Positions 4,674 through 51,333 of a DNA stretch of 64,000 nucleotides are shown in pieces. The notes under the pieces were generated by a model. That model searched no databases and was not told the DNA's origin. It saw only the letters and a program-made list of their open reading frames with translations. This DNA comes from Takakia lepidozioides (lineage: Eukaryota > Plantae > Bryophyta): positions 27,156,001-27,220,000 of the forward strand of contig CM060733.1 in assembly GCA_030704615.1 (NCBI GenBank), read 5' to 3'. The number at the start of each line of letters is the position of its first letter. Position 1 is the stretch's first letter. A program made the translations under genes and the position numbers.

Positions 4674-8566
<3,893 letters not shown>

Positions 8567-27157: not shown

Positions 27158-27963
27158 ACAACATTCTCAGCTCAGCATGGACTTCCTCAATTTTTGGAGT
27201 CATCTACAGCAAAGGTGTGCACCCTATTGCCAACCTCAACGGTGCAGCAACCTTGACCTTTTCTAACCCCTCTGACCTTCATCACTTCTCCACCTTCAAA
27301 CTGAGGCGTAGATGTTTGATAGTAACATATAAATTGCGGCATCATGTTCATTCCACTTGAGAATAGATGTCGCGCGTTTAGCCGTCTCCACATTGCAATG
27401 AATTTTGCGGGCACTAAGCAAGGCCCTCCACACCACAACATTTGGATTAATTGGCATTTTGTTAATGAAGTCCTCTGCCTCATCCAATCGCCCTACACTG
27501 CCAAGAAGGTCCACCATGTAGGCAAAGTGCTCCACTCCTGGAGTAATTCCATGATCTTTACTCATGGCAAAGTAGGATCTGTCTTCCACTAACATTTCTT
27601 CCATTAGTTGCAGGGCCTCCATATCACAACCATGCTAGGCATATCCTACGATAATCACGTTCCACAACACCACATCTCGTTCAGCTTTGATGACGTCACC
27701 ATGGACCTCTTTTGCCCTTTTCCAAAGCTGCCAATCTTGCGTGCACACGCATTGCAAACGCAAGCAAACATGATGTGGTTGGGTTTCACCCCTTCCCGCA
27801 TCATTTGCTCGTATGTCTCCAAAGAATTCATAACACACCGATGTTTCATAAAGCCTGCCATCATATATTACATGAGATCAAACCTCATTGAGGCATTTCA
27901 TTGAACACTTGGTGTGCATCCACAATGCTCCCACATTTAGCATACATGTTGATAAGGGTGATG

Positions 27964-28028: not shown

Positions 28029-28296
28029 TACCTCTGGCACTATCCGATTGGTTCGATCAATGGCCTGAAAGGACCCAGCATTGCACAACCCCAAAAGAAG
28101 CATCACCTTTCACAGCCTTTAGCTACAAATCTCCGGAAACTATAGACCCACATACTGCTTTGCAATGATGACATAGAGATGACAAGATGCACAAGATATG
28201 TTTGTACTCTGAATTCTAACCTCGTCAACGTGACCAGCCATAAACACCTCCTAAATCTCTGTTACCATTCCAGCACAAAAGCAATATTATAGAACA

Positions 28297-28326
28297 AACC
28301 CTATTTTAACTAATTCTGGACTTTTG
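28297..28326 (+). repeat. Left TIR AACCCTATTTTAACTAATTCTGGACTTTTG
   Basis: Reverse complement of 51304-51333 at 29/30 positions. Confidence 0.9.
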
Positions 28327-28849: not shown

Positions 28850-29990
28850 AGAAGGGTTTAGGGTTTTAAAGGGTTTAGGATAGAAAGAGAGAAATAAATA
28901 TGGACGACTCTAAACCTCTGTAGAATGTAAAAATGTAAGGGGAATTTGATATCCATGTAATCATTCTATCATACGTTATCCAACTTGAAAATTAAAGAAA
29001 ACTTCAAGAGAATGATACAAATTTTACAAGAGATAACATGGTAGTACAATAAGGTTTGGAGTTTATTATAAGTAGGGTACTACACTAAGGTTTTGGGTAT
29101 ATGGTAAAAGTAATGGTTTAGGGTGCTAAGGGTCACGCTTAAGCTTGGGTAAAGGATTATTAAGGGAAGGGTAAAGGGAAGGGTAAGGGTTTAGGGTTTG
29201 GATTTAGGGTAGAAAGGGACAAACAAATATGGAAGACTCACACTTGGTAGTACAATATCTTGGTTTGGAGTGTAAGTAGGGTAGTTACACACTAACCTGG
29301 TTTTTGGTATGTTATGGTAAAGAGTACTAATGGTTTAGGGTAGTAAGTGTCAGGCTTAAGCTTAGGGTAAGGATTAAGGCCAGGGTAAAGGAAAGGGTAA
29401 GGGTTTAGGGTTTGGATTTAGGGTAGAAAGGGACAAACAAATATGGAAGACTCACATATGGTAGTACAATAACTTGGTTTGGAGTGTAAGTAGGGTAGTT
29501 ACACACTAACCTGGTTTTTGGTATATTATAGTAAGAGTACTAATGGTTTAGGGTAGTAAGTGTCAGGCTTAAGCTTAGGGTAAGGATTAAGGCCAGGGTA
29601 AAGGAATGGGTAAGGATATAGGGTTTGGATTTAGGGTAGTTCAAAGGGACAAACAAATATAGAAGACTCACACATGATAGTACAATAACTTGGTTTGGAG
29701 TGTAAGTAGGGTAGTACACTAACCTGATTTTTGGTATATGGTAAGAGTAATGGTTTAAGGTAGTAAGTGTCAGGCTTAATCTTAGGGTAAGGATTAAGGC
29801 CAGGGTAAGGGTTTAGGGTTGGATTTATGAGAGTACACAAAGGTTTTTGGTATATGGTAAGAGTAATAGTTTAGGGTACTAAGTGTCCGGCTTAAGCCTA
29901 TGGAAGGGTTAAGGGAAGGGTAAAACGAAGGGTAAGGATTTAGAGGTGATGGTAAAGGTATAAATGGACAAACAAATAGAGAAGACTCGC
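28850..29990 (+). repeat. Subterminal tandem array (~214-216-bp unit, ~4-5 degenerate copies) rich in TTTAGGG-like motifs
   Basis: Anchor gggacaaacaaatat recurs at 29216, 29430 and 29646, degenerate at ~28885 and ~29966; contains gggtttagggtttggatttaggg tracts. Confidence 0.85.
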
Positions 29991-30371
29991 ACTCACTAGA
30001 ACGAGACATTGCAAAAAAACATTTAGACCGGATTGGAAAAGAAGAATCCAGGGGTTGTGCCAGCATTTTTTTTTTTTGTGCATTGTCTGTTTTGTAAGCC
30101 AGAATCCCCCATGTCACGAATATATGTAGATGAACAGAATGTACAGCAGTGCAGAGTCCAACACGGCAGAAAGAAAATAGATGAACGTCCACTGCCCACT
30201 CGAGGTTCATTGCGACAGAAAAAGAAGACGGGAAGGATCACCCAAAGCAAACACGAAGGGAAAGAAGCGTAAAGAAATTTTTATATCTTAAAATGAAAGA
30301 CCGGAAATAACCTCAACATTTAGTCCATGGATGGAAAATGGTTCGCAAGAAGAAAACCTTCAGGTATCTGG

Positions 30372-33300
30372 CTAAAGGTTAGCAACCTCCAAATTCGCGC
30401 GCGCCTTCACTGCTTCCACCGCTGTAATTGTCTTGGTGCTATTTCTTGTCGTATTTTTTTGTGGCGGCATTGTCCACACGACATTGTTCACGTGGATCCA
30501 TTGAGCAGGATCTGGCGGGTTGTACTCCCAAACTTTTGACCAACAGTCCTTGTACCTCTCAAAGTCTGAGGGGTTACCTCCTTTCTTCGGTCTCCACCAC
30601 TCCACCTTCACTTTCTTAAAATTGGGATCTTCCCTTTCTCGGATGACATCTGAAATTGCCATTCCCATCCAGACCGGGCACGTCGTTGGGTCATGAGGGC
30701 GAACGAGCACAAAATACCCTTTCTCAATATCTTTGAACGGATTCAAGGGTATCCTTGGACGCTCACACCTAGGGCCACAGTAAGGTTCTGGAACTTCATC
30801 CTCATCTTCCATATCTTCCAGTATCTGTGGCTGGATGTCATCCCTCCGATGTTTTGAGGACCAATTTGTTTTCGGCCAAAATCCCTCAAGAAACTGAATA
30901 CGATCCGGAATGTCCTGCATTGGCTTATCAAGTTCGGCGAGAATATTTCCCCAGTATTGGTCATATTGTTCCATCACACCCCGGTAATGATCGTCAAGCA
31001 ACATTCCTTTGGTCCAAAAATCTCTGTATTTCTTAATACATTTTTTATGAATGATTGTTTTTCTGAGGAGTCGTCCCTAACTCCCCATATCGGTCTTCTT
31101 GGAACAACATCTGGTTCTCCTTCAGGGAGATATGGAGTCCCATCAGGATTGGACTTCCACATCTTAACGCTGGAGTTTGTAGGAAGCCACTCCGAATCAG
31201 TAGCTGACTTCTTGTACTTCATAACGGGCCAACCATCCGCATCCTTAAAAAATCGAAAGACGTGCATCTCTGAGATCCCGACCAAAGCCTCATTTCCATC
31301 ATGAATACAACCCTTAACAAACTTCTTGAAGTCGCGAACCTCCTGTGTGATTTGAGGAATGAATTGCATATCTTGGGAGATCATGAATGACCTCATCAAA
31401 TCCGGAAGAATGTAGGTGTTGCGTTCCTTTAGCTTCGAGAGAGATAGCTAAAGAATCCGTCAATATCCTCATGGGTGTGCCCGACCATGAGAAAACCAAG
31501 CTGGATCTCTTCAAAGACATCTTTGGCAGTGAGGAGGGATATGAAAGCAAGCATCCATCTGTTCTTATTGTCCTTGGAGGAGTTGTCCATCTGCAAATAA
31601 AGTCGTCTAGGAAGTGGTCGAGCACCACGTTTATCGTGTGGCCTGCAGGGTTTCAGAGCCTCCAAACATCTCGATTTACCTCTCATGAGCGTTTCAAAAA
31701 AATCATTTTGAACTTCAGTGTCGAAAATGTTCCTGGATTCCCGGCATGTCGGCTTTTCCAGTTGGCGCAGGCACCGAGCCAGCAACCCAATTGTGAAGTT
31801 TGAATTGTCTTTCCAGAACTCAAGGGAAAATTGAGCGTAAGCTCCATCTCCGTGTCCGTGCGTAACCATTCCTGTCAATGAGACATGCAACTGACCCAAT
31901 CCGGAGACCATCTTGTTCGTCGTCTGTAGCCTCGGAATAGCCGTTTTCCTATGATCCATCTTATCATGAATAATACATAGGAACTCCTCCGGAACCATAA
32001 CGGACTCATTCCTCCAGCTATGGTACAGCCTTCTGCATGACTCTTGATGCCTCAAGTGCAAATCAAGCGTCCGCTTATGTGCGACCTGTTCGGAACTCCT
32101 CTTAATCGACTTCTTGATCAAGTCCTTGAACATCTCGCATTCTGTGCACTTAGCAAAGGTGCTTCCTGTTTTCCGAACCTCCACGTTAGGAAATATTCGA
32201 TTCCGTATACGGCTTATAGCTGGCTTCGAGACTCCTTTCAAACCGAGCAGTCTGTTTGTCTGCACCCCAACTCCCCAACAATGTCAACGTCCACTGGGCA
32301 GTGGAGGTTTTACAAAGTGGAAGAACCTCCACTTTGAAAAACGAAAGGAGACAACGAATAAAAGTCACCTCGTTGGACTCCTCTCGAATTCTCTTCCAGT
32401 TCATTTCGGGTGGCAAAATTCTCAAAGTATCCCGACGTCCCTCTCCAATGCAACGTGTTTTGTGAGGCATAAGGTCAGTATTGGCATTGATAATGGACAT
32501 AATGTTCCCCTCTGCCTGGAGTGTCCCTGGTCGCGGCCGCTTGACGCCACGAATTCCGTGGAAAGATGACAAACAGCCCTCTTTACTGAGCTTTTTGTAC
32601 TCCATGTAAGTTGACCTTCCAATTCTGTATATTATCCACCATGCTTTCTCACAAACATCAACACCTTCTATCGTAACATACGACCTGCGCGATGACCCAT
32701 CCATAATGTGAAGTCGTTTTGAAACATTCAATCCAAGTTCTCTCCTCTCATCGAATGACGAACCCCAAAATGCAGTACAAATTGCCAAGGTTTTTCTCCA
32801 ATCAAAATACTGGCAGCACTGAAGCTTGCAGCAAGGTTTGCTGCTCACCGACCTCACTTCATCCAAAGTAAGATTTTTCTTGCACTTTTTTTAGTCCTCC
32901 ATATTGGATGGATTTTTCTTCTTAGTAAAATGCCTGTATGCTGCTTTCAATACGCCTGTACCATGGTCGTCATTCTCCATGTCACTGCATGATCGTAGGA
33001 AATTTTCGAGATCAACGGAGAGTATCCGACCATTTTCAAGAAGTCTTGTTTTTGTTAACGGCCATTTCACAATCGACATCAGTGAACCGGACTCTCCAGA
33101 AATTGTTCTAGTGACCAGAACCCCAACATCGTTCTCTCCGAGTTTGTCATTCAGAATGATCTCGTTAGGAATGCATGCTTGAATTCAGCCTTCGAACAGG
33201 GCGTTTCCGTCCTCCCCAAGAAGAAGACACTGCAAGTTTCTCCAATATTCTCTCCCCAGACCTGCAGGCAGATCCCCCCCAGTCTCACCGTTGGACGGAA

Positions 33301-33658
33301 TATCATTGCTTTCAGTGCTTTGTCCTTGATAATCACTACCTTCTGTGATGGAATGACATCCTGGGTTTCTCGGGGATGATGAATCCACAGTTTCATGCGT
33401 GCGAACACAGGACACGTCCCACACAACTGGAGTCCCAATCGCCTCCTTCAATGTGTCAGCATCCATGTGTCGATAAGGCAGAGGACATGAGCCAAATGCG
33501 TCATCACAAAATATCAAGGTAACTGAAATGGTGGACGAACACAAGTGGTGTTTGTGGCAAGTTCCATCCCCAGAAACATTCAGGCAATCTCCTGAGGCAA
33601 CAACTGAAGGAGATCCAGGAAGCGACAGAAACACCCTTTGGCCTATTTGGAACCCCAT
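30372..33658 (-). pseudogene. Sola-like (DUF7869-type) DDE transposase; intron 32260-32368, two in-frame stops and two frameshifts
   Basis: CC..QCC; FAKCTEC; IIHDKMD; LYLQMDNSSKDNKN; FLMVGHTHEDID. Probable start MGFQIG at 33658; stops at 33185 and 32891; frameshifts near 31435 and 31030. Confidence 0.85.
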
Positions 33659-36600
33659 GAAGTTAGTAACCTCCACTGGGCAGTGGAGGTCCAGTAAAAT
33701 CCTATTACTGGACTGAAGATTAACTGAAGGAAAGAATGACTTGCCACCGAAAGGAGAAACTTTAAGTATAACTTTTTTGACGGTTTTGAATGAGAAAACA
33801 ATATGGATTAAAAAAGTAAAGTCAATGTTTGGATCTACACTGGGACTGATAAAAAACAATTGGAATTAAATTGGAGTATGAGGGCGGAGTATAGACTACA
33901 TCTATCGGAACTGTCAGATGAAGTCACAATTGCCAACCTCCACTGGGCAGTGGAGGTTGGATGATATCTGTTGATGAAATAAACCACATGGATGAACAAT
34001 GGATAATGAAGAGGCCCTCTGTAGATGACAAAGTGATTCTATGGATGGATGAATAATAATGTGGCGATTGCCCAGTGGAGGTTTGGGAGTAACTTTAGAC
34101 AAACAAAAGCAAGTTTAGTTGGTGCATATGGAGAGTACACAAAAAATTGAGTATCATACTATCCTACGTGAGAAATGTGCAGTTGACACCTGAGACTAAG
34201 GAAGCAGGGAGAGACTCAGAGGTTGCTTCAGAAGTACCCTATGGGCAGAGTGGTGCAGGATAGGCAAAGAGGTACAGGTTGTCCAGAGAGGTGCACGATG
34301 TCCAGAGAGGTGCGTGAGAGAAAAGAAGCAAGTGAGAGGTTCAAAGTGGGAAGTTGGTGTTGTGTGGATATGGACGTTATATAGAGGTGACATGTAACTT
34401 TCATCTTTGAATCGCTCCAATGGCAGTGTGGTATGCTTTCTCTCTCGGATCGATTTGTGGCCACCGTGGATTAAGGCGGAATCGAACGGCTTATTTCAAC
34501 TCGCAAAATCTTGGCTTCATTGAAAGTGTGCACAATTTTCCATTTATTGACAGCAGCCACTGTCACATTAATTATGGAACAAACGATAACGGCCGCAATC
34601 AGACTGAATTCTATCGTACTTGTAGGTTAGTAGGACTACAAGTCTGGCATCATTATCGTGCGGCTCTGACAGCAGACTGTGGAATAAGTGTGAAGGATGT
34701 CGATTCTGACAAGTGGCCTGGAGAAATGAAGTCAGGCGGCTAATCGCCACAACTAATTCGGGACTGCACATTAACAATCGATCATTATAATTAGCTGGGA
34801 GGAATCCGGAGGTGAACCATAAAGCACTTTGAGATTGTTCTGTTTATATTTATCGTGCTATTACAGTGAATAAAACACTTGGGCAGGGCGGTTCATTATA
34901 TGCCGGCGCATTGCATTGGACAGCGAGGGCGGTGCATTACAGGTGTGCGGAATGCTCTGTCGTGCCTTGCTTGCTTGCACATGTTTAAAGTAGGGATGGA
35001 CCCCTCGTGTTGGGTATCCCTCGATAAATGGGCAGTCCCTATGGTGGCTCTGGACCTTAAATCGAGGAATGCCCGACACGAGGGGCCATCTACTATCCTT
35101 AAAGCCGTATGTCTATCAGGGAATATTGACGCCTGGAGGCTAACAGCCAAAAGTTATTGTGGACGGCTCAATATGAGACAATGATTATACAGTGTGACGA
35201 ATCCGTAGGTACAGCGTTGTGTCCTTTGTTGGCTTCAAATCTATTTTAAGATTTTTGTAAGCGTGAGGGTTGCAGAGTCTGACCAATGGCGTCATTACAA
35301 TCATTTCGTCCTTTTTCATTCGTCTATCCAGTCGTCTGTCCAAACGTGTGTGCATTCGTGGAACAAAAGTTGAACTAATTTCATGTGTGGATGCACAATA
35401 TTAATGATAGTTTGCGTGGATGGGGCAGAACATCCATTTGGACCGCGCGACCGTTCGATTTCGGACGGAGGCGATGGTTCAGATCATCCGCTTATAAGGG
35501 GTGCGCTCTTTGAGCCCGGCCTTTGGGCTTCCCATTTTCTACACGTAAGCGCTGCGCGAGTGAGAGCTTAACAGTTGAGAGAGGAGAGCGTGAAAAGAAG
35601 AGTTTTGGAGCTCATTTTGCAGCGACTGGACACTGGAGCGTGGAGAGAAAGAGCAGACTTGGCCGAGTGCAGAGAGAGGAGAGGGTGAAAGGTGAGAGAG
35701 TGAAATAGGCGAAATTTGAAGAGCGGGGAGGAGAGACCGGACACTGGCGAGTGGAGATTGACGAGTGTAGAGGCGAGAGCATAGTGCAATTACCGGCAGG
35801 CGGAGGTGCGGAAGAGAGTATCAAATGAAGGACTGTGGTTGCAGGGGCACCAAAATGGCCGGCACAAGCAGGTACAACATAAAAAACTCCCTCTTTTCGT
35901 CTTCTATTTCACGTTTTGTGTTGGCCTGTTCTCAGTTTTGTGTTGGCCCGCTCTCGATTCATGTGGCATGTTCAAGATTCAATTCGTTTCGATCTTGCTT
36001 CATTCTCTGCTGCACTGCACTGTCTTCAGTGCTTCAGTCCGTGCTTTAGTGCACATTAGGTTTTTGTTTCATTGTTTGCTTCGTTGTTTGCTTCAATGCT
36101 GTTTCATTCTCTGTCAATTTATTTCACTCCTGCTCCATTCTGTGCTTCAGTGCATTCCCGAGTCATTGCTTCACTGTTGTTTTTCAATTCACCAATGGTT
36201 TGTAGGGTGGTTTTGTGTGGTGGTTTTGTGTGCAATTGGGTTTGTGTGTGCTTGTTCTGGTCGATTAGGGTAATGGTTTAGGGTGGCGGGAGATTACCGT
36301 GCTGGTTGTATTGCTTGTTTTGTTCATTGTGGTGGTTTATTGAGGACAGTGGTTTAGGAAATGCCCGGATGTTTATTTCTCAACCGTTTTCTTGATCCCC
36401 AAATCCAGCGTTAGTTGATGCATTTCTTCCCATTCACGATTCTGAAAGGAAATTTTCATTTCTTATCCAATTATATCGAATTCGGCAATTCTGAAAAACC
36501 ACGATAGCCTAGTCTACTTGTATTCTACAGTAGACATATGCTAACAGGAGGCTTCGTGCAGGCCAGAGTAGAGTATTCGTAGACCCATGTCATACACATG

Positions 36601-36885
36601 AGCAACCAGAAACTGGAACCTCCACTGCCCAGTGGAGGTTCGTGTGAATTCTGTATGTGGAAGCTGAAAGACATTTATTTAAAGTAAGGACGAAATCGGA
36701 TAATTACGGGAAAATTGAAATCAGTTTGAGACGATGTGGGAACGAGTGATGGAATCATATGTGTAACATTGTAAGTGTGACACATACTTTTCAACGAGAC
36801 CGGGATACGATAATTGGGAACCTCCACTAGTTCGATATTTCTTTGGGTCAGCCAGTTACACACTCTGATTAGTTTTTATGTCAGA

Positions 36886-37538
36886 ATGAGAAAGAGGAAC
36901 GAGGGTGGGGAACCGGTGTCTGACGATGAGTACAAGACAGCCAGATTAAATTGGAGCAAGAGACGGTGTTTGGTAGACGTGATAGAAGCGGACCGTCCAG
37001 ATCAAAAACATGGTGTTTCGGAACCAGATGAAAAATCCAGTTGGGGGTCTACTGAGCCGAACAAAGTGTCTATCAATGACGAAAATGTGACTGTAGAATC
37101 CCCGCGGAACGCATCCGAATCTCCGAGCAATACACCTGAAGTCATCTGTAAGGATACCCTGGCGGAAATAAGAGAAAGCGTTCATGTAAACAATGATATC
37201 AACGGATCTCCTGCCCACTCCCAAGATTATCCGACATACACCCCTTCAGACTATTCCCCAGACACATTGGCGGCGATACGAGTGACCGTTTTTGGATATC
37301 CAACATCTCCGGGTTCCTCGCCAGCATCTTCTGAATCCAATCAGGATCTGAAGGATATTATCCTCCAAACTTCCTCCTGGACACTGAAACGAGCGGGGGA
37401 GTCCTGGAACTATTGGACGTCTCCGGATCTCCAGGATACTCCCCTGCGTCTCCTGATAGTATCACCGGATCCCCAAAATATACCCCTCCAGACTATTCGC
37501 CTGATACACTCAGAGAGATAAGAATGAGCATTCTGTAG
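36886..37538 (+). pseudogene. Cargo exon encoding S/P/Y-rich repeats (YSPDTL.EIR, YSPASPD); frameshift near 37340
   Basis: Acceptor tcag at ~36884; repeats NTPEVICKDTLAEIR / YTPSDYSPDTLAAIR / YTPPDYSPDTLREIR. Confidence 0.5.
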
Positions 37539-37983
37539 TTCTTGGGTATATAATCTAGAATCGTCTGAATATAGTGCGAGAAGTTCCTTAGTATATTTTG
37601 GACGAATTAGGTTCGAAGATTTCTATTGTAGATTAGTCATGTTTGAGGATGATGTACTCAATGGCTCCTTAGCCTCATTTTCATTAAAGTTTTTTTCTTC
37701 AACATCTGAAAAAAATGGAGGATTTCTCATTTCATGTAGAAAGAGTCGTACATACGAACCTCCACTGTCCAGTGGAGGTTTCTCATTTCTGGAATGATGG
37801 ATGCTAGTAAGAGAGATCTTGTTATTTGATTATCTAATAAATTTGTGTTTGGTTGTAACAGAAGACATCCTACACCACCAGATTGCGTCCCGGGATTGAT
37901 TGGAGATATTTGTGGCGCATTCGTATGCTGGAAGTCCTCACATTTCAAAACTGAGCATACCACTATTTTTTAGTTTAACCCAG

Positions 37984-40900
37984 AGGTGACAGATTGGGGC
38001 ATCGTGTCTGTCGGTACACCTCCTGATCACAAACTGTCTTTTCATTACAGAAGTCTTGGAGTAATAACAGACTTAAAATACGCAGAAGCTCTCGATATAG
38101 AGCTTGAATCTGAAGAGGAAAACCCGATGTTGGTTTTGTTCCTGCATGAGGATGCGAGAACCCCCAGGACGTTTGGTTTCAAAGTGGAGGTGGGTCGTCT
38201 GAACAAGTCGTTGATGAGTGAATGCGTTGCACTGGGTTTTAGATTTCCAGACGAGAGCTCTGTATTTACAGACGTAGGTTTGTCGAGGGCCTGGAGTATT
38301 TTTCTGGATCTTCTGCACGCAATGGGGAACGACATTCGCAAGAAACGAGCACTAGAGAAAGCATCAAAGCCGAAGAGGGGAAAACGCAAGTTGTCGACAG
38401 CCGGCAATGATGACAATGAGGCCGGGACTTCCGCAGGAAAGAAGAAACAGAAGGAGGATCAGGATCCAGCATTGATGTCAGATAACAAGAGACCTAAAGC
38501 TGGGGAGATTTTTGACAAGGAAAAATGCGAGAAGATGGAGGAGAGGCTCACGAAGGAATACAATGATGTATTTCCATTCGGATTCAAGAGTACCTTCCTT
38601 GTGAAGGTTTCCATGATGGAACTAGCTCCAAGGAGCATGGTTTACAGGCCGTTAAATATCAAGCATAAGGACGAAGTGAAAGCGCGACTCTTCCAACTTC
38701 ATTTGTTCGACTCCAAACATCCGGTGTATCTTGCGCCAATCAACCCTTCCAATCCCGAGAAGATTGCTTCATCGCGACCGAAACAATGGAAGGAGATGGA
38801 CGTATCAAGGTTCTTCGTAATTGGTGGACAACACACCATCGTGGCAGCAAAGGTAATGGACTTCATTTCCTCCCAGACCTCTCTTTTAACGAACCTCCAC
38901 TGGGCAATGCAGGTCCGTGTTGAACTACAAAATTGGATATGTCCCCACACTTTCAACTCTCTCACCCATTTTACATTAACTGTAGCATGAACTTCTCGAG
39001 GATCTTTCCGACAGCGAACTGAAGGAGTACTACCGGGAGTGGCCTACGAAGATTGCATGGTCTACCGATGAACAAAGACTCCTGAAGTTGTCAAAGCTCC
39101 TCAACGATCCCAATAAGGCGCAAAAATTTGATACAACAATGCCGGAGAAAGTTGCGCATGCGTGAATGCTATTCAACCTGAGGGGGAAGCCAAGGAAATA
39201 CAATGATCACACCACAAAGTCCGAGATGAAACAATGGAAGGTATGCATTTATGGAATCAAAATCTACTATTCACATTCATTTTATGCTAAAGAATACTTC
39301 TGTTGTCGGAGTGACAACTAATTTATCCCTGAATGAATGTGCAGGAGTTCATGTTTGCCTGTCATTTGATACTAGAAATGGGTAGCATTAAGGAGGCAAT
39401 GGTCCTGGTACTTTGCGACGACGACGTTTGGAAGATCTGGGAAGATGTTTTCAAAAACTAGGAGCAGGGAAAGCTACTTGACCCGCTTGGGATACAGTAC
39501 AAGGGTGAACAGCAACAGCTCACGAAATCTGCTATCGCAAAGCTGCAAGGGTTGAACAGATGGTAGCTGATAAAAGTTGCGCAGAAAATCCTGGACCTGA
39601 AATTGACCATTCGAGATTACAAAGGTCAAGACAAATCAATTCAAGGCATGAACAAGTACATAGACGACATGAAAATGCGCCGGTTTATTGTCGACGATGT
39701 GATGGAAGTGTTGGGGTGGCCTCGGAGGAGAAACAGTGTACAGAACCGTACACTAAGGACGAGTGGCGTAAAGTGAAGAGAAAGTACCACTGCAATAAGA
39801 CAGAGTTATCAACATTTAAAGACAAACTGGGGACGGATTACATCCAAAGCAAGATCAAGATGAACATGGAGACAAAATCACTCACGGCCGTTTTTGTTAA
39901 GTACGTCTCCTCCATCAAGAAAGCTTATGAGGATAGAGAGGATGCCATGGCAATTATTTCAGCGAGTTTCAAGACTCATTACGCTATCATGGGTGGAGAA
40001 ACAAAATTCGCCGATGCCAAGTCCCGTCTGCGACTCGCACCGAAGAAACGGTTTGACAACATAGCGATGGTGTTCGTCAATACAGTTTCTGAAGACGACT
40101 CTGTCGTATTTGAGTCCAATGATTACGTGAACATACTGGAGGCCTTTGTGGCTCAGAAAATGAACACGAGTGCTTTTGTTTTCTTCTCGACGCAACCGTC
40201 CTCGGCCAATCTGGTCTCCTACATCCGAAATGGTCCCGGAAGAACATCGTATCTTGTCCATCAGGGATTTTATGTTCCGGGAGAGTATGAAAATATTGTG
40301 CTGTTTTTCCAGCGACACCTGAGGAGATGCAAAATCCGGACAAGCACATCTCCACCGTACTGTTAATCGAGCCAATACAACCCGATTCTGGAAGGGCCCT
40401 CTGAGAAGCCATCAGCTTTTGAAGAAGAGTGCAAGACTTATAATCATGAGCTACGAGCTGACACATACGACTATTTGGCCTCCATGTTTTGTCGAGACGG
40501 GATGTCCGCTGTCAACATCTTCGGAGGCGTGATGTTGACGTACGCCCTTCATGTAAGTGTAAAACCTTTTTGCATTTTAAATACGAATTTTACATTTTTG
40601 ATCCAACAAGTCCTCTGTTTTACTGACTGGGTTTATCTGCGGGCAAGAAACATTCGAGTGCTTGACATCAACCACTCAACCAAGAAAAAGTTTTGCAAAG
40701 GAAAAGTTGAAGCTAATTTTAAGAAGCTTCAAATTGAGAATGACAATGTTGCTGAAGAGGTTGACGGCGGAGACGATGATGAGGATGAGGAGGAGGAAGA
40801 TGAAGACTTGGAAGAAGGAGGCGGACATTTCGAATACGTAGAGGAGGACGAGGGCATCAATGGTAACGGGGACAACGAGGGCCACAATGGTGACAATGCA

Positions 40901-41410
40901 GACTGTTGGGAGGCTGGACACCTGTATGTGATTCATGACTTCAGAACTCAGTCACAGGATGGTATTGAGAACATCACCCAAGACGTTGCGGTCCACAATG
41001 TCGTGATTCTAGATGGGGATTCCTCGAGTTCAAGTGAGAGAACTAAGAGTAATCCTGCTTCACCATCAAGGGGTGCGGAGGCGAGCTCAATCGAGGTGCG
41101 CGGCAATTTGATTGGGAGTGTAGACGATTGGTTCAAACCTGTAGAAGGGGACGAGCCGGCGCCAATGTCCCCGTCTCCCGCCAAAGAGAGGGTAGAGAGA
41201 GCGAGGACAAAGAGCCCGTGTCCCACAAAAGACAGTGGATACAGAGGGAGGACTAAGAGCCCGTCCCATGCAAAAATGGACAGTGGTGACAGAGGCAGGA
41301 CTAAAAGCCCGTCTCCAAGAAAAAACAGCGGAGGCAGAGGCCGAACTCAGAGCCCAACTCGCTCTCAAAGTGTCTCCCAGTATGTCAATTTGGATGTAGG
41401 TAACGAATGA
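37984..41410 (+). pseudogene. Multi-exon cargo gene: NLS, ParB/Srx-like domain, degenerate beta-class methyltransferase-like region, acidic tract, RGRTKSP repeats
   Basis: Exons ~37984-38852, 38986-39240, 39345-40552, ~40642-41410. Motifs RPLN..H..E, FFVIGGQHTIVAA and ELR..Y..L...FCRDG..AVNIFGG; premature stops at 39163 and 39459. Confidence 0.6.
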
Positions 41411-41540
41411 TACCTGGAGATTTATGGTGTCTTCAAGCATTATAAATGGAACAAATTGTGTGTATTGCATCTGGTTGTGTTCTGGTTGTGTTTTTGGCAA
41501 TACCTGATCTGTATCTTAATATTTCCCACATTCTTGAAAT

Positions 41541-44500
41541 CACTACAACAGATCGTGGTATATGTGACTGTATATATGACTATCCCGTAGTCATAAATGG
41601 TACATATGACTTCTATGACTTAAAGTCGTGCAAACCAAGTCAATTCAATGAGTACAGTATGGTCGGTCATGGATGACTGCAGTCAGATGAACCAAGTGAT
41701 ACATCTCACTGTCATGTGGCAGTCATACGTACTTCTACCATACATGACTTAGTGTGCTGCTGCAAACTGTACACGTGTCTATTTCTAATAAGTCCAGGAG
41801 GTTTTGTGGATGTGTGCCATATGGCGTCTCCCGAAACTGCCACGTGGTATATCCATGAGGAGGATCTGCAGTCATTATCCTGACTACAACCATGCTAATA
41901 TATGGATACGTGACATATAATGAGGAGGTCTTGCAGTCATTGTCATGACTACAAACATCCTGATATGTGGACACGTGGCATGTATTGAGGAGGTCTTGCA
42001 GTCATGATCCTGACTATGACATGCTGATATATGGACACGTGGTGTCATATGAGGGGTTGTTTTGAACTTTTAAATGTATTGGACAAGCAGAGCCACGACT
42101 ATGCTTATCTCATTAGGGTTAGTAGAGATTAGGGTTAGTATTATTCAATACTAAACAAAGAGAAGAACAAAGGGAAGAACAAAGACACAAAAAATGACTC
42201 TGCAAAATGAATGTTTTATTCATAGGCAAGAATCACAGGAAAGAACATAAAGACAACAGTAGATGTAAGAGCTTCTCTTAAACTGCTGCCAGTCAAATTT
42301 ACAATATAGCACCTGAGTCCCAAAATCTGCTCCTCAAACAATAGTATGACAAAGTGCAAAGGACACTACATATGCACTGAAGATAACAACAGATGTAAAA
42401 TGCGTATGTCTTTCTACATTTGCTACTGTTCCAGCATAACAACAAATCAGCATGATAGGGTGCACCCACATTTTGCATGTACATGTCCACAAGGGTACTG
42501 TTCAGAATGACATTTGGTAAAATTCCAGCTCTGACAATGTTGCGATGGACTTATGTGCCCTTTCCAGAGCTGTCAGGCTTGCACATGCATCGCAAATGCA
42601 CAAAAATATGATGTGGTCAGGCTTCACCCCTTCCCCCATCATTTGATCATAGGTCTCCAAAGCCTCCATACCACGTCCGCCCTGCTGTGCATACCCTGCA
42701 AGCATCGCGTCCCATGACACCACATCTCGTTCAGCCATAGTGTTGAAAACTCCCTTTGCATCCTTAATGCACCCACATTTGGCATATATGTCACCAGGGC
42801 AGTGTTCAGAATGACATCCGGTACAATTCCAGCTTTGGCGATGTCACCATGGACCTCTTTCTGGCCCTCTTGGATGAATCTGGACCCACACTCTATCCCT
42901 GCTCCTTCAGCTATCCATGCCTATGCATAAATCATGCATACATCCTTGCCTTGCTGCTAGCAGCTGACGATGACAGCCTAGATTTATTCTAGGAAACACC
43001 CAACTCAACTTATCACACTAGTTCCTATGCTCAATTGCATATGCTACTCTCTATAATCAGACAGACATTCACCTTCTTGCCTGGATTGTCCCACCATTGA
43101 CTGGGTAAGAAAAGTATTCATTCCACAGCTTCTCCTCATCTCTGTTACATGTTTCTGGATGCTTTCCTGTTGTCACATTCGCAGTATCATGTCAAATCAC
43201 TCCAAACTATCAAAGGTTCACTCAACCAGCTAGCATGCAGAATTCAACATGGAAACTTAGGGTCAATTATGATAAGAAGGAAAAACAGGGTGAAATGTGT
43301 TGAAGAAGGTGCCTTCATTAGTAGTGCCTGATTTATCAATTCCACCGCTACTGCTGCAGCTTCCAATTGACCATCTATCCATGCAGGTTGCTAGTAGCTA
43401 TTGATCCACAGGGAATCATAGGAGCTTGAAGTCCGGCCCTCTTCGATGAATCTGGACCCACACTCTATCCCTGCTCCTTCAGCTATCCATGCCTCTACCA
43501 AAATCATGCATTCACCCTTGCCTTGCTGCTAGCAACTGATAATGAAAGCCTTGATTTGTTCTAGGAAACACCCAACTCAACTTATCACACTAGTTCCTAT
43601 GCTCAATTGCATCTTCTACTCTCTGTAATCCAACAGGAATTCATCTTTTTGCCTTGATTGTCCCACCGTTGACTCGGGTCAGAAAAGTATTCACTACAAC
43701 AGAACGCTCCCAGGCTTGCACACGCATTGCAAACACAAACAAATATGATGCGGTTGGGCTTCAACCCTTCGCGCAACATTTGCTCATAGGTCTCTAAAGC
43801 ATTCCTACCAACCCATGCTTGGTAAATCCTGCCAACATTATATTCCACATGATCAAAGATCGTTGAGGGATTCTATTGAACACTTGGTGAGCATAGATGT
43901 ACACCAGGGGAATGTTCAGAATGACATCTGGTACAATTCCAACTTTGATAATGTCACCATGAACCTCTTTGACCATTCCCAGGGCTGCTAAGCTCGCATA
44001 TGCATATTATAAACACAAATGAACATGACCCGGTCTGCCTTCATCCCTTCCCATATCATTTGCTCTTAGGTTTCCAAAGCCTTAATCCCATACCCATGCT
44101 GCACATACCTTGCAATCATGGCATTCCAAAACACCACATCTTGTTCAGCCATATTGTCGAACTCCCCCTTTGCATCAGGCTTGCTGCACCCACATTTGGC
44201 ATACATGTCCACCAGGGCAGTGTTCATAATGACATCTGGTACAAATTCAGCTTTGATGATGTCACCATGAACCTCTTTCCCCTTTCCTAGAGCTCCTAGG
44301 CTTACACACACATTGCAAACACAAACGAATGTAAAGTGGTTGGGCTTCTCCCTTTCGCACATCATTTGGTCATAGTTCTCAAAAGCCTCCATCCACACCG
44401 TAACTGTGCATATCCTGCAATCATCGCACTCCATGACACCCACATCTTGTTCAGGCATACTGTCAAACACTCCCTTCATACATGTCCACGAGGGTATTGT

Positions 44501-46032
44501 TAAGAATGACATGTGGTATATTGCAACTCTGACAATGTCGCCATGGACCTCTTTGCCCTTCTCCAGAGCTGCCAGGCTTGCACACACTACAAACTATCAA
44601 AGGTTCACTCAACCAGTAACTTACAGAAATTCAACCTGAAAATTTAGGGCCAATTTTGATAAGAGGGGAAAATAGGGTGAAATGTGTTGAAGAAGGTTGC
44701 CTTCATTAGCAGTGCCTAATTTATCAATTGTGCCGCTGCTGCTGCGGCTTCTAGTTCACCATCTACCCATGCAGGTTTCTTGTAGCAATGGATCCACAGG
44801 GAATCATAGGTAGTCTTGTGCTTGAAATCCGGCCCTCTTCCAGCAAACACCCCAACCCTAATGATGAGAGGGAAAAACAGACTAAAACAGGTTGAAGAAA
44901 AGGTGCCCTCACCAATTTAGGGCCGATTCTGATAAGAGGAGAAAACAGGGTGAAATGTGTTGAAGAAGGTGCCTTGAGTAGCAGTGCCAGATTTTATCAA
45001 TTGTGCCGCTGCTGCAATTTCCACAACTGAACTGACAGAGATTGAAACGCAGCTTGCTAAGACCAAGCTGACTCTCCCAAGAACCTTGTAAACATTAGGA
45101 AGAATACCAAATCATAACAAGAGCCCAAGAGCCCACATTTGCAGGATGGACTAACTTAGAACTTTACATGGTACATTAAGAAAAAGCCACACCTTGTGAT
45201 TGCGGTTGTCCTACCATCGTGAAGAAATTCAGGACCGAGTCTGATGAGAGGTCAAAACAGGCTGAAATAGGTCGAAGAAGAAGGTGCCCTCACCACATTG
45301 TCCTCGACCTTGTGTCATGACCCATGGAGGATTTGACTGACCATGAACACAATAGGACCTCTTAAGTGTGTTGCTTGTGTCTGTAGTCAGGTAATGTCGT
45401 ATTGGTCTGTGAGAACCACCACGGTGCAGCTGAGCGGGCATCGATTGAAACACGGACTGCTAAGACCAAGTTGTCTCTCCCAATAACCATCAGGAAGAAT
45501 ACCAAATCATGGTACTAACAGGAGCCAAGAGCCCATTGCGATTGCGGTGCAGGTTGCGCTTCGCCCCTTCCTCCATCAGTAGCTCAAGAATAGGTCTGCA
45601 AAGCCTTCATCTCGTGCCCCTATCCAGCGATCATTGCGTTCCATAACAGCTCGATACTAAGAAACCGCGCAGGAGAAAAAGAGAAAGAAAAACTAAGTCC
45701 CAACCCTCTCATGCGCAACCCTATAAGTAATTTTTTTTTTAAAATTAACCTTTTGGCTACCAGGCTTGCACTAGAAGTCATTCTGGCGACTATTTGGTGG
45801 TGAGCTCGCGCTGGTCAACCATCGTTGACCAACCATCCCTCTAGTGCGGAGCCATGCAGTCATGACAACGTCTACCAAAGTAGTCGCCCAGAGGACTACG
45901 TAGTCACATAGTCATTTCAACGACTACGTGAAGCCCCATTTGATCCAAAAATACAGGGAAGTCATGGTCAAAGTCAGAAAAACCATGACTACCACGGCTC
46001 GGCAGTCAGATATACCGCGATCTGTTGTAGTG
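41541..46032. mobile_element. Nested non-autonomous CACTA (Pack-CACTA, 4492 bp) carrying PPR fragments
   Basis: TIR CACTACAACAGATCGTGGTATATGTGACTG (41541-41570) matches 46003-46032 at 28/30; TSD AAT; subterminal AGTCA-N6-YGACT repeats at both ends. Confidence 0.92.
42440..45650 (-). pseudogene. Mosaic of PLS-class PPR motif fragments captured in the CACTA
   Basis: DVVSWDAMLAGYAQQG..EALETYDQM..EGVKPD; NTALVDMYAKCG; interspersed with internally duplicated non-coding blocks. Confidence 0.85.
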
Positions 46033-46400
46033 AATTTACATGTGACTGACGGTAAGAAAACTCGTATAGATCCATGAACGGAAATTGGAGGAAATCACAC
46101 AAACCCGGACAGAATCCATCGCGACTCAAACAGTGAGGAGGCAGGTGGACTTCAATAAGGGCCAGCCCAACTGATCCGGTCAAACAAACAACCTCCACTG
46201 CCCAGTCGACGTTGCGAGATGGAGGAGATGAGCCGGAGATGGTCGTTGCTCACCGCGAAGGAAAAGAGAGCGAGCAGCACCATCAGCAAATTCGGAACCC
46301 CTCCCCGAAACATGTATACACCTCATAACCATCTTAGCTATGTTCTTCTTTGTCCTTCTTCTAGTTTTCAAAATAAATTAATTGTTCTGTTATTCCACAG

Positions 46401-47133
46401 GATGATATGATTCACCCTCCAATCGACTATCACAAATCTGTGAACCCACAGGATTGGTATCGCCTCTCTGAGGGACCGAAAGGATCTCGACCACGATACT
46501 ACGTCCTGGTTCTTGACGTCGACTACCTTGGTGAGGTTTACATCCGAGATGCCCTCCCGCAACCCATCCTTGTGTGTGCGCTGGAAAATTCAAGCTTGCA
46601 GTCCGAAATGGGTTGGACGACTTCCTGAAATGGGTCCTTAAGCATTTTGAGGTCTACTTTTGGAACACTGGACCGTTAGAAAATGTCTTGGATATAGGGC
46701 TGGCTTTGTTTGGAAGAAGGTTTTACAAGGTCAGGGAATTCAACAATGAGAACTGCGTGAAGCATAGACAGACGTTCAGTGCCGAATGGCCCAAATATCC
46801 GAAAGCGCCAATATATCTTAAACGTCTCTACGACCTTTTCACTGTAGACGACCCTGTAGCGTACAAATCAAACACACTTCTTATCGACACTGTAGAAAAT
46901 ATGTATAAGTCGTACTTGAACCCAAAGTCGCTCGGTATCATCCTTCCAAAATATAAAGCGCTCGTCGACCCATACAAGGACAGGTTTCTTCTTGATGAAC
47001 TCAAACCGCACCTGGAAGAGTTGCGGTTATCCGGAAAAGACGCTGATATATTCAACGTGGAAAAACCCATAGGATGTCCACCGTATAATGACCAAAGGTC
47101 AAATGCCTCTTGCTATGGGATTTGCAGTGACAG
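46401..47133 (+). pseudogene. FCP1/NIF (HAD-fold CTD-phosphatase-like) domain 1
   Basis: VLVLDVD..; VRNGLDDFL..VLKHFEVYFWNTG; YLKRL; NTLLIDT; frameshift near 46580. Confidence 0.7.
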
Positions 47134-47307
47134 GTTTATCTTAGAAAACAAAAATTTCCTGACGCTTCATTGGAACAGTTTGAAACGTAAATAGCTGCTC
47201 TAGATTTTCATGAACCTCGACTGTCAAGTGGACGTTTCTCCCAATGTCAATCTTGTCCTTGGTTTATCTTGATTACCACCTGAGTGGATGTATGAATTTC
47301 TCACAGA

Positions 47308-48037
47308 TTGCAGCACCAGTTTCTCCAGTTGCGAAAGGATTGTGCTTGATAATTTTTGACCTGAATGGAGTTTTGTGCAAAGTCTTGAAGCACCAGAAGA
47401 GCTACCGTGTCCCCGAATGTCCGAGACAGACTACAGAATACCAGCTCTTGTTGGATTTCGACTTGTCTTTATGCAGGAAAAATATCGTGAGATGTGGACA
47501 GAGTTGAACAAACATTTCCGTCTAGGTATATGGAGCTGCATGATGTACAAGAACTTGCAGCCTATACTGGACTTTATGCTTTGGGGTCTTCCTCAGCCAA
47601 CATTCGTTATGTCTTAGGAAGATTGTATCTCCTGTCCTACTTCTGTCCACCCTCAATTTATATCAGGATACGACCCGCTGAGTCTGTTCTTGAAGCCATT
47701 GATGACTGTCTGGCAAAGATTTGGTGGTCAGTACAACCTGAGTAACACTCTACTTATTGACGATTCAGCTATTAAGTGTGTGTTGAACCCGCCTGAATCC
47801 TGCCTGATTCTAAAATCGTTTGAATCCGTTGAGACGGACTCTTGCTATCTCCAGAAGGTTCTTCAGAAATATTTGCTTGGAATAAAGAAATCTCACACGG
47901 TTTCCAGTTATCTCAAGGAAAAGAGGATAGGACTTAAGCCTTGTCAGAATGTTTCCACCGATCCCAAGTTTAAGCCTCTCCTGGATTATGTTGATGATTC
48001 TAATTACGGGAATCTCCGATATGATGCTTCAAAATAA
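47308..48037 (+). pseudogene. FCP1/NIF-like domain 2
   Basis: LIIFDLNGVL; FRLGIWSC; S*EDC; FLKPL..VW; NTLLIDDS..K..LNP. Confidence 0.8.
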
Positions 48038-49669
48038 AGATTTTATTGATCAACCACGTCTGTGATTCAATGTTTATTTTTTATTGGTTTTTTTTATAGG
48101 TTGTATTGTTTTTCCAGAAAAACTGTTGTGTACTGTGATTTCCTTTTCAATCTGAATTGACATGGAATTGTTTGGTATTTCCTAGTCTCATCCAAGCGTT
48201 TCTCCACCCCATACCATCCCGATCCTCTGAGATACAGGCCTTCTCCGAAACTCGTCTCGGGGGCTTTTTCAAATCCGACAACCTCCACTGTGCAGTGGAG
48301 GTTATCCTGTGTCTGTACATTGACCTTGTAAGTTCGTTTCTGCATGTTCATGGCGATGCTGTTGATGCCAACTTCTTGTCGGGACTTCCATTGGAATCCT
48401 CCATATCATAAATTCGTCTACAGAGGGACAACATTCACACTACTGTTGAGATTTCTGTCATCGACGGTGAAGCATCATCCAGGCACTTGGCTTCCCTTCA
48501 ATTGCACGACCCTCTTCTTCAGTCCATTCCTGAAAAGGATGTTCTGTCGCAGGATTGTTTAGGATTGAATGTCGAAGATGGAAGCCAACTTGTCAAATGT
48601 GTAGGGGATTTCGTGGACCTCACTCTACAATCCTCACCCTTCGTGTTAAGTGTCAATGGTGTGAAATCTACCTCGAGAATGTCATCCGTTGAGGACGCGG
48701 CTGAGGCTGTGGCTCCACAGCACAATGTTGCATCTCTTCCCTCCTTCTCTCCCCAGCACGAAGGTTGGACAGCCCAAATCAGAAGAAGTCAGGTAAAATT
48801 ACTTATATCTGAATTCTAACTCGTCATTTTGTTTTCCTTAGTACTGGGTCTGATGTTCTTGTTTTACTCCAGACCAGAAAATATGCGGATTGTGACCTTC
48901 CTGTCAAACGACGTCTTCATTGGAAATCTGTTCCGAGGTAATCCCTTCGTTACGTGTGAATTCCATTCAGGATGTGGAGTGCTCAAGGGACAATTTCCAT
49001 TCCGTTCCCCTTCTCCGAAACCCTTTCGACGAGGACAAGGACGAAACTTCAATTACAACTTCTGGGCTTCCCGACCCTGCGGTGTTGGCGCAATGTTCTG
49101 CACCGAGGAAGTGGAATAGGGCCCCCAAACCATTTCCATCTCTTCTACAAATCGATTACACCGGAGAGAAGCCCTTCGTCAGAGACAAAGCAGACTCGAG
49201 GAAGAAAAGGAATACCTCGGACATACCGGGGTCTCGTCAAAACACGTCCATTAGGATGTCAAGCCCGCCAGCGAGACTTTCCAATAAGGCGACATCAGTA
49301 TTATTCGATATCATTTCTCCACTTTCTTCTTTTTTCTGTTCGTTTGGTTATGCACTAATTAACTCCATCTTTTCTCAACAGGCGGGGATGCAGCACGATA
49401 CCTTCATCAATTTCCCTCCGTACAAGGTACTTTCCTGAACCTCCGCTTGGCAGTCGACGTTCATCTTCTTAGCAATATTAACCCTCCTCTTTAAACATTC
49501 CAAGCCCATAACATTGTGCAGTATTTTGCCATTTTCTGCACAATCGTGTTGATCTTCCATACACTCAATCATTCTGGGTCGTGGGTATTTTTCATGGCAG
49601 AAACACTAATGTCAGTGTGTGATTAACCTGCTCAGGATAACTTTGTCTCTCATCCTTTACATGCAACAG

Positions 49670-50400
49670 CGGGGAAGAGGAAACGGATGTTGTTAATTTT
49701 AAGTGTCAACGGACTCCTCTACTACCGGCCACCCCCAACCGGCGGTGAACTATTTAAGGAGAAATTTCGTTTCAGGAATGTGACACTTCAAGTTCCTGAC
49801 AGACCGTTTGTGGTGCCTCGGCCTGGAGTCTTGGAGTTTCTGGACCTTGCATTGAAGCATTTTCACGTGGCCATTTGGTCATGTGCTGATAGAGGTGTTC
49901 TTTGTAGGATGTTGGAGAGCTTCGTCCCCACGAAAATAGCGAAGAAGTTTTGCTTCATATGGTCTGCTGAGGATTGTAAGGATACCACCGGTTATATGAG
50001 GCCCGGGATGAAATATCTCGTGAAGGATATCCGAAGTGTTATTGTCAGGTACCTGGTAGACCATTTGCTACGCAGGGGCAAATAATTCTTGTAGATGATG
50101 AGCCATCAAAAGGCCTGCGAAACCCACAAAATATTGGATTCTTCCCTTTCTCATTCAAGCCTTCACCAAACGGATTGCATGACCGGGATGATATGACAAA
50201 AGCAGTGTGGCCATATATATCAGAGATGGTTGGAGCTTCAACAGTCGTTGATTACATTAGCGAGAACCGAGCAAAGTGTTCTCATAAGCCTATTGGTCGA
50301 GACCATGCCTGCTGGGCCTAGTATGGAAGATATCTTGATCCTCGTATTTGGATCCCACAACAAAAGGAACCTGATTACCTTGGTAGGCACGTGGATCCCA
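49670..50400 (+). pseudogene. FCP1/NIF-like domain 3
   Basis: LLILSVNGLL; PRPGVLEFL..FHVAIWS; FIWSAEDC; after a frameshift IILVDDEPSKGLRNP. Confidence 0.75.
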
Positions 50401-51303
50401 CTCTTCTCTTCTTTGTTCATAATTTGATTTTCCAATTCTTTTGCAGCTGCATTTGCACTCTTACCTCAACATATCCATATGCAAACTTCCACTTTGGGCC
50501 TAACATTTGTCATTTCCATCGCCTCTCCCCAGTTACATTCAAGGAACGAATTCTAAAAGAGGAACAAGAGTTGCGTGATTGGGAAGAATGGCGGGCGTGC
50601 CGGGAGGCTTCAAGGGCATCAAGTAGAGTTGGCAGTAACATTTCAGATGACAATGTCAGCCGGTTTCACCTTCTTGAAAGTATCTCCGTGTCATCTGGAG
50701 CGGAGACCGTTGCAAGTGGCTGTGGTAACCGGACGCGTCTTCGGACACATGCCTTGACTGTGAGCCGTTTGGGAGGCTCAGTATTATTAATGAGTTAGTA
50801 TAAGCCGTAACGGTTCTATGCCTTCAGCATCAATGGTTTGTATGGCATTAAGTCCATGAACGGATGGACAGTTGACATTCATTTTTCTGTTGGTCCATCG
50901 TCTTGAATGATATAATCTCAAATAAAATATGAATGTTTCATATTATCAATGAACTCCCGACAGACTCGTTTTTCCATGTTGTCCTCTTAATCACATCCCA
51001 TCATTGTTTCATATTTGGTTCTGCCATTATTCCATGTTTGTTTCTGGATGTCATTTTGGATATCGGAGCTCTCATCATTGTTTGATTCATTGCATCCTCC
51101 CATTCCTTTTAATGAACGTCAACTTGGCAGTGGATGTTCATCTAAGACCACAATACATACTTGTATTTTTGCGTAGAATGTGTGGAGGATTACATAATTT
51201 GTTGTTATATAGTGCACAAATAGTCAAATAATTATAGATATATCTCTTTATTTCTATTATAGATTATAATTATTCATATATCTTGTATTATTTCTAGACC
51301 AAA

Positions 51304-51333
51304 CAAAAGTCCAGAATTAGTTAAAATAGTGTT
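51304..51333 (-). repeat. Right TIR of the giant element
   Basis: caaaagtccagaattagttaaaatagtgtt followed by TSD aaca. Confidence 0.9.

Follow-up and report, generated by a model that had tools for sequence, protein, structure and literature searches.

The stretch of DNA analyzed here is a 64-kb window from the genome of the land plant Takakia lepidozioides (assembly GCA_030704615.1, contig CM060733.1), and all coordinates given below are positions in this window. It contains a DNA transposon of ~23 kb (28297-51333) that carries a Sola1-like transposase gene on the minus strand and a set of cargo genes on the plus strand. The cargo consists, in this order, of open reading frames (ORFs) without assigned function, an exon that encodes a ParB/sulfiredoxin (Srx)-like domain, further ORFs, a nested CACTA transposon, and three FCP1/NIF-like phosphatase domains. 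Dispersed between these genes and in their introns are 12 copies of a 24-bp palindrome. They are most likely selected binding sites for a dimeric protein that the element itself encodes, and the leading candidate for this protein is probably the ParB-like accessory protein. The palindromes, together with one related palindrome of flipped arrangement, are distributed as follows.

30184-30207: palindrome 1, three arm mismatches, 3′ of the transposase gene
32286-32309: palindrome 2, within the conserved transposase intron (~32266-32367)
32313-32336: palindrome of flipped arrangement, GTGGAAG-A-ACCTCCAC, in the same transposase intron; the arrangement resembles that of the closest sister family (L003, see below)
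33668-33691: palindrome 3, located 9 nt before the presumed start codon of the transposase (ATG at 33658, minus strand)
33935-33958: palindrome 4, perfect, in the divergent intergenic region, with a solo half-site at 34073-34083
36617-36640: palindrome 5, perfect, between ORFs, with a solo half-site at 36819-36829
37757-37780: palindrome 6, perfect, ~195 bp upstream of the ParB-like ORF
38892-38915: palindrome 7, three mismatches, in the intron (38853-38985) directly 3′ of the ParB-like exon
46190-46213: palindrome 8, 5 nt upstream of the ATG (46219) of the first NIF-like ORF
47213-47236: palindrome 9, three mismatches, just past the end of a NIF-like ORF (47191)
48280-48303: palindrome 10, perfect, between ORFs
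49438-49461: palindrome 11, four mismatches, 11 nt past a GT donor at 49427
51115-51138: palindrome 12, three mismatches, 195 bp from the right end of the element

The palindromes follow the degenerate dyad AACSTCSACTG-NN-CAGTSGASGTT, which is matched exactly six times in the window and 12 times when up to three mismatches are allowed, while dinucleotide-preserving shuffles of the window yield no match at all. A half-site position weight matrix (PWM) built from the 24 arms scores the 12 dyads at 27.6 to 39.7 bits. The next best dyad in the window reaches 12.6 bits, a level that shuffled sequence also attains (3-16 bits). The pattern and PWM scans thus bear out the 12 dyads and the constant 2-bp spacer (12 of 12) listed in an initial annotation of this DNA. 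Its statement that the motif is confined to the element holds as well: the solo half-sites that deviate by no more than one base (32324, 34073, and 36819) all lie between the terminal inverted repeats (TIRs), and both the nested CACTA and the 41 kb beyond the TIRs are free of dyads and solo half-sites. Beyond the window, a search of 596 Gb of prokaryotic genomes (185,579 species genomes) finds no copy of the motif, and the JGI metagenomes contain one, by which a bacterial parS site or a common motif is rejected. The arms depart from the consensus mainly by C<->G exchanges at arm positions 4 and 7 that arise independently in either arm, which looks like two tolerated bases in a protein site and not like decay. 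The consensus of the family contains no CpG, and the C<->G transversion variants create it.

The sites are spread over the body of the element about every 1 to 2.7 kb and are found in almost every noncoding segment (promoter regions, introns, and 3′ regions), with none inside a coding segment supported by homology. Once the nested insertion is removed, the intervals between them are more even than random (coefficient of variation 0.51, P about 0.01), and five of the 11 intervals have lengths of 1023 to 1158 bp (P about 0.02). This ~1.1-kb spacing is not a relic of recent tandem duplication, because the inter-site segments share no DNA similarity; the palindromes are the only DNA that these units have in common, and similarity at the protein level is limited to E~0.01-0.06, so that tandem duplication was rejected as the source of the spacing. 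The sites do not cluster at the ends of the element: 1.9 kb separate the first one from the left end, and 195 bp the last one from the right. A degenerate partner had been proposed ~230 bp from the left end (28526), which scores 4.8 bits as a dyad and is noise. The suggested role of the sites in synapsis finds no support, because this left-end partner is noise.

The intron placement of several sites stands in part. The transposase intron that holds the site at 32286 is defined by the similarity to relatives, which drops out from ~32266 to ~32367, and the intron location of the site at 38892 follows from an upstream exon end that is common to all 21 relatives of the ParB-like exon. For the sites at 47213 and 49438, the placement rests only on ORF ends and the GT donor. 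The sites at 33668, 33935, and 46190 lie 2 to 9 nt upstream of candidate start codons. A site had been described 10 bp upstream of the probable transposase ATG, and the position of site 33668 relative to the minus-strand ATG at 33658 agrees with this, although the first exon that would begin at this ATG has no homology support.

Position-matched counterparts of these sites occur in related elements, in which the palindromes differ in sequence. The comparison loci are DNA from public assemblies that encodes related transposases or ParB-like homologs (L001-L003, L005, L006, L009, and L013-15). The intron orthologous to 32266-32367 holds family-specific palindromes in seven of them: a CGTGAGATCTCACG-type palindrome in L001, three CATCGGGAGATCTCCCGATG-type palindromes in L002, several palindromes of the GTGGGGAG-NN-CTCCCCAC type in L003 and L005, and GTATCGGCGG-N-CCGCCGATAC in L013-15. 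L003, whose transposase is 61% identical, has 17 palindrome copies with a variable 2-bp spacer, arranged in tandem arrays or located within two transposase introns. The arm core of this family, CCTCCCCAC, is similar to CCTCCAC of the window in flipped order, and the flipped palindrome at 32313-32336 has the order of L003. L014 (transposase 47% identical) encodes a partial ParB-like ORF (hidden Markov model [HMM] match at 3.5e-5) and a NIF-like ORF. Within 21 kb, it contains 28 copies of its own 21-bp palindrome, of which 13 form an array with a period of 59 bp that stops just before the ParB-like ORF. L013, L014, and L015 are 10 to 23% diverged, and eight of 10 sites are found at orthologous positions, several of them with flanks that cannot be aligned. 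Site identity amounts to 80% compared to 71% in other noncoding DNA, even though the sites are rich in CpG. Two further ParB-like homologs have inverted-repeat arrays of their own upstream, namely L009, where a NIF-like ORF follows downstream, and L006, which is located near a CACTA transposase.

Most of the palindrome differences between the copies of L013, L014, and L015 are CpG-to-TpG/CpA transitions, which would be typical of methylated DNA. L003 (1-17593) and L005 (1-21137) hold the closest transposase relatives (58-61% amino acid identity) together with the palindrome-bearing intron. On the L003 metagenome contig, the relative lies beside mraZ-rsmH-ftsI-mur-mraY, and on the L005 contig beside flagellar genes. 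The GC content jumps at the joins (55-60% versus 70% and more) and in L005 then falls to 31 to 38%. Both contigs are probably chimeric assemblies; alternatively, the element may be shared across very different genomes.

The ParB-like gene is separate from the transposase gene and is encoded on the opposite strand of the DNA transposon.

37974-38852, plus strand: ParB/Srx-like exon, core at 38496-38852, ending in ...FFVIGGQHTIVAAK|gt; the next exon starts from 38986

An exhaustive HMMER search with the exon core finds 21 relatives (best E-value 5.5e-15), mostly exon-sized ORFs. All of them end at one position, where GGQHxxxxxK is followed by intron-like read-through, so that the position of the intron behind the exon is conserved. 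A model calculated with AlphaFold from the alignment of the relatives, which covers only the first exon of the domain, reaches a predicted local distance difference test score (pLDDT) of 74. In a structure search against 48,161 chains, six chains match this model with Z≥2 (Z 2.2-3.5), and all six have ParB/Srx folds: SerK (3.5), KorB (3.1), SbnI, sulfiredoxin, the N-terminal domain of pNOB8 ParB, and PadC. Foldseek returns no significant match (E>2), with a weak list that is dominated by KorB, Noc, ParB, and sulfiredoxin. The look-alikes proposed by a protein language model (Atlas) are DUF6551 and ParB_N, in agreement with the ParB/Srx clan. On the basis of this model, the conserved exon probably has a ParB/Srx fold, with low scores.

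The reading that we favor, with moderate confidence, is that the palindromes are cis docking sites for a dimeric protein of the element family, most likely the ParB/Srx-fold accessory protein, which would mark or regulate the body of the element. Each 11-bp arm would be read by one subunit of the dimer. The bound protein would then act on the whole element body and not on its ends by influencing its transcription, chromatin, or silencing, and the FCP1/NIF-like phosphatases that are encoded alongside may take part. The copy in the window would be acted on in trans, because it is defective (frameshifted transposase and nested CACTA, see below). That a protein binds, which protein it is, and what its binding does are all steps that we infer.

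The idea that the element is covered with binding sites for its own ParB-like protein is strengthened by the gene of ParB/Srx-type fold and by the architecture of the sister elements. Several observations weigh against this protein as the binder. The scores that place the exon in the fold are low, and the ParB-like ORF yields nothing in Pfam, in a word-based homolog search, or in a sequence search of the PDB; a profile of the exon gives only chance matches to PDB sequences. The window protein reads GGQHT where GxxR of ParB and DGQHR of DndB have a conserved arginine, and its homologs continue after GQH with S, T, M, or I. No helix-turn-helix (HTH) was matched by Pfam in the ORFs scanned, in which exons were taken singly, and no dimerization domain was found. 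ParB folds without an HTH, such as SerK, SbnI, and Srx, are enzymes and not DNA clamps (PMC12704722). In the fetched DNA of L001, L002, and L003 (±10 kb or less), no ParB-like ORF is detected despite the palindromes in and beside the transposase gene, and the ParB-like ORF of L015 has no palindromes adjoining it. Docking to a ParB-like protein also leaves the spread of identical 24-mers to unrelated positions without an explanation.

A serious rival, though one that we consider unlikely, is that the transposase itself binds the palindromes via its N-terminal cysteine-rich, HTH-like region, either for autoregulation through the promoter and intron sites or with the sites as internal enhancers of transposition. 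The palindromes in the conserved intron and just upstream of the transposase are the one feature common to all Sola1-like loci examined, even where a ParB-like ORF was not detected. The half-site core is most similar, with CCTCC(CC)AC, in the sister family whose transposase is also the closest (61% identity), and site 33668 precedes the putative transposase ATG by only 9 nt. Binding by the transposase fits less well with the lack of concentration of sites at the ends, with a TIR sequence that is unrelated to the palindrome half-site, and with five sites located far away, among the NIF-like cargo. The loci in which no ParB-like gene was detected extend over ±10 kb at most and may represent truncated elements or deletion derivatives. 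A captured host transcription factor or chromatin protein would likewise have a palindromic site in noncoding DNA, and nothing specific speaks for it. No site is found in the 41 kb of flanking host and other transposon sequence or in the nested CACTA, and sister families in other genomes have quite different palindromes at matching positions. Because these families differ in the palindrome and not in its position, a co-evolving binder encoded by the element fits better than a conserved host factor, to which we give scarcely any weight.

The palindromes could also act without any bound protein, as intronic or untranslated-region RNA hairpins in splicing, translation, or small RNA production, or as DNA cruciforms. 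Perfect copies do fold at about -22 kcal/mol (z -4), many sites lie in transcribed noncoding segments, and three are located directly before candidate start codons. However, the departures from the consensus among the 12 copies are never compensated in the opposite arm (0 compensated versus 20 uncompensated), the covariation between the arms (score 0.032) stays below the shuffle mean (0.045), and Rfam contains no match. The fold is lost in diverged copies (z 0.3 and -0.85), whose half-sites remain recognizable; moreover, some sites are intergenic or 3′ of genes, with an inconsistent relation to the strand. These results speak against a structured RNA hairpin family and make the hairpin or cruciform reading quite improbable, and the preference of the initial annotation for the site of a dimeric protein over an RNA hairpin, including the uncompensated C/G variation at half-site positions 4 and 7, is upheld. 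There is a similarly slim chance that the copies are selfish or mechanistic by-products without a function for the element, that is, palindromic insertions that are spread by template switching or gene conversion as in some organelle genomes. Near-identical 24-mers in unrelated flanks do call for a copy mechanism, and they are tolerated in noncoding DNA only. The flanks of the 12 copies share no common sequence, and target-site duplications (TSDs; 2-4-bp direct repeats) of their own, the finding that the initial annotation had named as evidence against it, were looked for and do not exceed the chance level (one of 12 for 2 bp); the palindromes are thereby ruled out as a miniature inverted-repeat transposable element or other short mobile unit. 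The by-product explanation conflicts with sites that are kept in position across sister subfamilies with unalignable flanks, with the private sequence of each family, the repeated use of one intron and the even spacing, and with C/G alternatives that recur at two fixed positions, unlike mutational decay. The hairpin, selfish-insertion, and host-factor explanations are all less likely than docking of an element-encoded protein.

Element-encoded proteins that recognize motifs in their own family are known from other plant transposons. VANC of the Arabidopsis VANDAL elements (Mutator-like) recognizes short motifs in the noncoding DNA of its own family and alters the epigenetic state. The window element is similar in that motifs for an accessory protein would accumulate in the noncoding DNA of its own family, with the difference that they are palindromic, whereas VANC motifs are short, nonpalindromic, and arranged in tandem; VANC is also unrelated to ParB and belongs to another transposon superfamily. 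TnpA of En/Spm binds repeated 12-bp motifs, partly in inverted pairs, and regulates promoter and methylation. These motifs are confined to the subterminal few hundred base pairs, while the sites in the window are distributed over 21 kb, with few of them at the ends.

The concept of a transposon-borne, ParB-like self-binding protein is not new. It was proposed in 2025 for red-algal Plavaka and brown-algal Sola1 elements, to which a land-plant member is added here. In the red alga Bostrychia, the Plavaka accessory protein PAG3 has a ParB-like N-terminal domain and tandem inverted-repeat arrays beside its gene, and self-binding was proposed by Petroll et al. (bioRxiv 10.1101/2025.02.11.637652). 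Dinatale et al. described a ParB-like plus methyltransferase gene opposite the transposase in Sola1-1_Ec32 of Ectocarpus and likewise suggested self-binding, with palindromes unmentioned (PMC12477816). ParB-HTH-methylase fusions were reported in chlorophytes and chytrids by Iyer et al. (PMC4738411). The window element shares with the algal transposons the large size, the separate ParB-like accessory gene (opposite the transposase, as in Ectocarpus Sola1-1), and the element-specific inverted repeats near this gene (36617 and 37757 upstream, 38892 in the next intron). It differs from them in its land-plant host and in its dispersed, evenly spaced single sites in introns and intergenic DNA instead of tandem arrays only. 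Furthermore, no fused methyltransferase or 2-oxoglutarate domain is confirmed in the window element, its cargo additionally comprises three FCP1/NIF-like domains, and palindromes are found in a conserved transposase intron across families. A literature search found no report of such a system for land plants. What the present analysis contributes is that the intron location of the palindromes is conserved and that sites keep their positions between sister families, together with the linkage to NIF-like cargo and the absence of the arginine.

The best functional analog is KorB with its operator OB from the IncP plasmid RK2, a ParB-family protein of a mobile element that uses a short palindromic operator at several positions. 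KorB is a clamp that loads at these operators, slides in a cytidine triphosphate (CTP)-dependent manner, and silences promoters at a distance (PMC11790492). It is the second-best structural match to the ParB-like model. KorB has an HTH, a dimerization domain, and an intact CTP-binding motif, whereas no HTH or dimerization domain was found for the window protein and its conserved arginine is missing; RK2 is bacterial and has neither introns nor chromatin, and OB and the window motif have no sequence similarity. Bacterial ParB-parS systems also use palindromic, dimer-symmetric sites, several per replicon, and a ParB/Srx-type N-terminal fold. The window motif is unrelated to parS and is not found in prokaryotic genomes, no ParA-type family turned up in scans of the window ORFs, and a chromosomal transposon has no role in segregation.

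A more far-reaching and tentative proposal, which is drawn from the analogy to KorB and which we regard as rather doubtful, is a eukaryotic transposon-borne operator network of the KorB/ParB kind. An arginine-less ParB/Srx-fold protein on about a dozen palindromes ~1 kb apart would recruit the FCP1/NIF-like phosphatases of the cargo, which are of the type that acts on the RNA polymerase II C-terminal domain (CTD). The SP-rich, CTD-like tail of another cargo ORF would also be brought onto the element, and polymerase activity or silencing would be controlled along its full length. The module would be conserved across Sola1-like families of different plants, with a binding specificity that shifts from family to family. 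If the ParB-like protein does bind, plant DNA transposons carry a bacterial-style operator system by which a family recognizes and regulates only its own copies. Such self-recognition would bear on the question of how giant transposons escape or tune silencing. The recurring intron palindromes and their retention in place provide concrete material for testing, as protein/site pairs from several families can be swapped.

The element is delimited by 30-bp TIRs (29 of 30 positions, 97% complementary) and a 4-bp TSD (AACA). Its transposase gene and the features at its ends and in its interior are located as follows.

28297-28326, plus strand: left TIR, with the TSD AACA at 28293-28296
29081-29962, plus strand: left subterminal tandem repeats of ~214 bp, rich in plant telomere-like TTTAGGG
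30390-33184, minus strand: Sola1-like (DUF7869) transposase gene, multi-exon, with homology-supported exons
30390-31046, 31100-31441, 31435-32265, 32368-32887, and 33017-33184, minus strand: approximate transposase exons, from homology to relatives
41541-46032: nested CACTA insertion with the TSD AAT, which interrupts the cargo region and contains no palindrome
51304-51333, minus strand: right TIR, with the TSD AACA at 51334-51337

The transposase matches Pfam DUF7869 (2.6e-34) and has relatives with up to 61% identity. The label Sola1-like derives from the likeness of this DUF7869 transposase to Ectocarpus Sola1-1, and the 30-bp TIR and the 4-bp TSD are present. A 4-bp TSD is the rule for the Sola1 superfamily. 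The reading frame of the transposase is broken by a 2-nt insertion (+2 frameshift) in a (CT)n run at ~31435 (31430-31445, minus strand), a region through which all transposase relatives read without interruption. Because this insertion shifts the frame, the copy is unable to make an intact transposase. With the frameshift and the nested CACTA, the sequence marks this copy as defective, and its TIRs suggest that it is fairly young. The TIR begins with AACCCTA beside the TTTAGGG-filled subterminal repeats. A telomere-like array of 1.7 kb (4317-6050, both orientations) with the same motif as in the window is also present in L006, a ParB-like homolog locus of another organism.

The remaining cargo flanks the nested CACTA on both sides.

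39509-41407, plus strand: cargo ORFs with no assigned fold, whose C-terminal part is acidic and is followed by an SP-rich repeat
46535-50318, plus strand: FCP1/NIF-like phosphatase region, with domains at 46583-47032, 47522-47941, and 49807-50306

A methyltransferase had been claimed for the ORFs at 39509-41407. They show no Pfam match at E≤10 and no homologs in a word-based search, they receive an Atlas score of 0.81, and a model that was calculated from the single sequence with AlphaFold2 has a pLDDT of 34; the claim finds no support in any of these analyses. The SP-rich, CTD-like repeat tail (41100-41407) closes the ORF that precedes the NIF-like domains. The three tandem FCP1/NIF-like domains are of the RNA polymerase II CTD-phosphatase type and are only marginally alike (E 0.01-0.06). 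ParB-like and NIF-like ORFs are linked in two unrelated public loci, L009 (NIF-like ORF at 4508-5221) and L014 (19675-20391), and because this linkage recurs, the pair looks like a conserved cargo module. Outside of the transposase, the ParB-like exon, and the NIF-like parts, similarity to the relatives is too low for gene models.

The nested CACTA contains internal repeat units (42477-44600) and coding fragments of pentatricopeptide repeats (44069-44593, minus strand), by which it looks like a gene-fragment-carrying CACTA. A related stretch (27630-27919) is found outside of the host element. The element is followed on its right side by a retrotransposon of the Ty3/chromovirus type (53024-57645, minus strand) with gag, protease, reverse transcriptase-RNase H, integrase, and chromodomain. 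To the left, at 11950-13392, 15606-16190, and 17741-18361, ORFs that encode DTW-domain, alliinase-like, and S1 self-incompatibility-like proteins are located, a neighborhood whose sequence fits plant-like genes.

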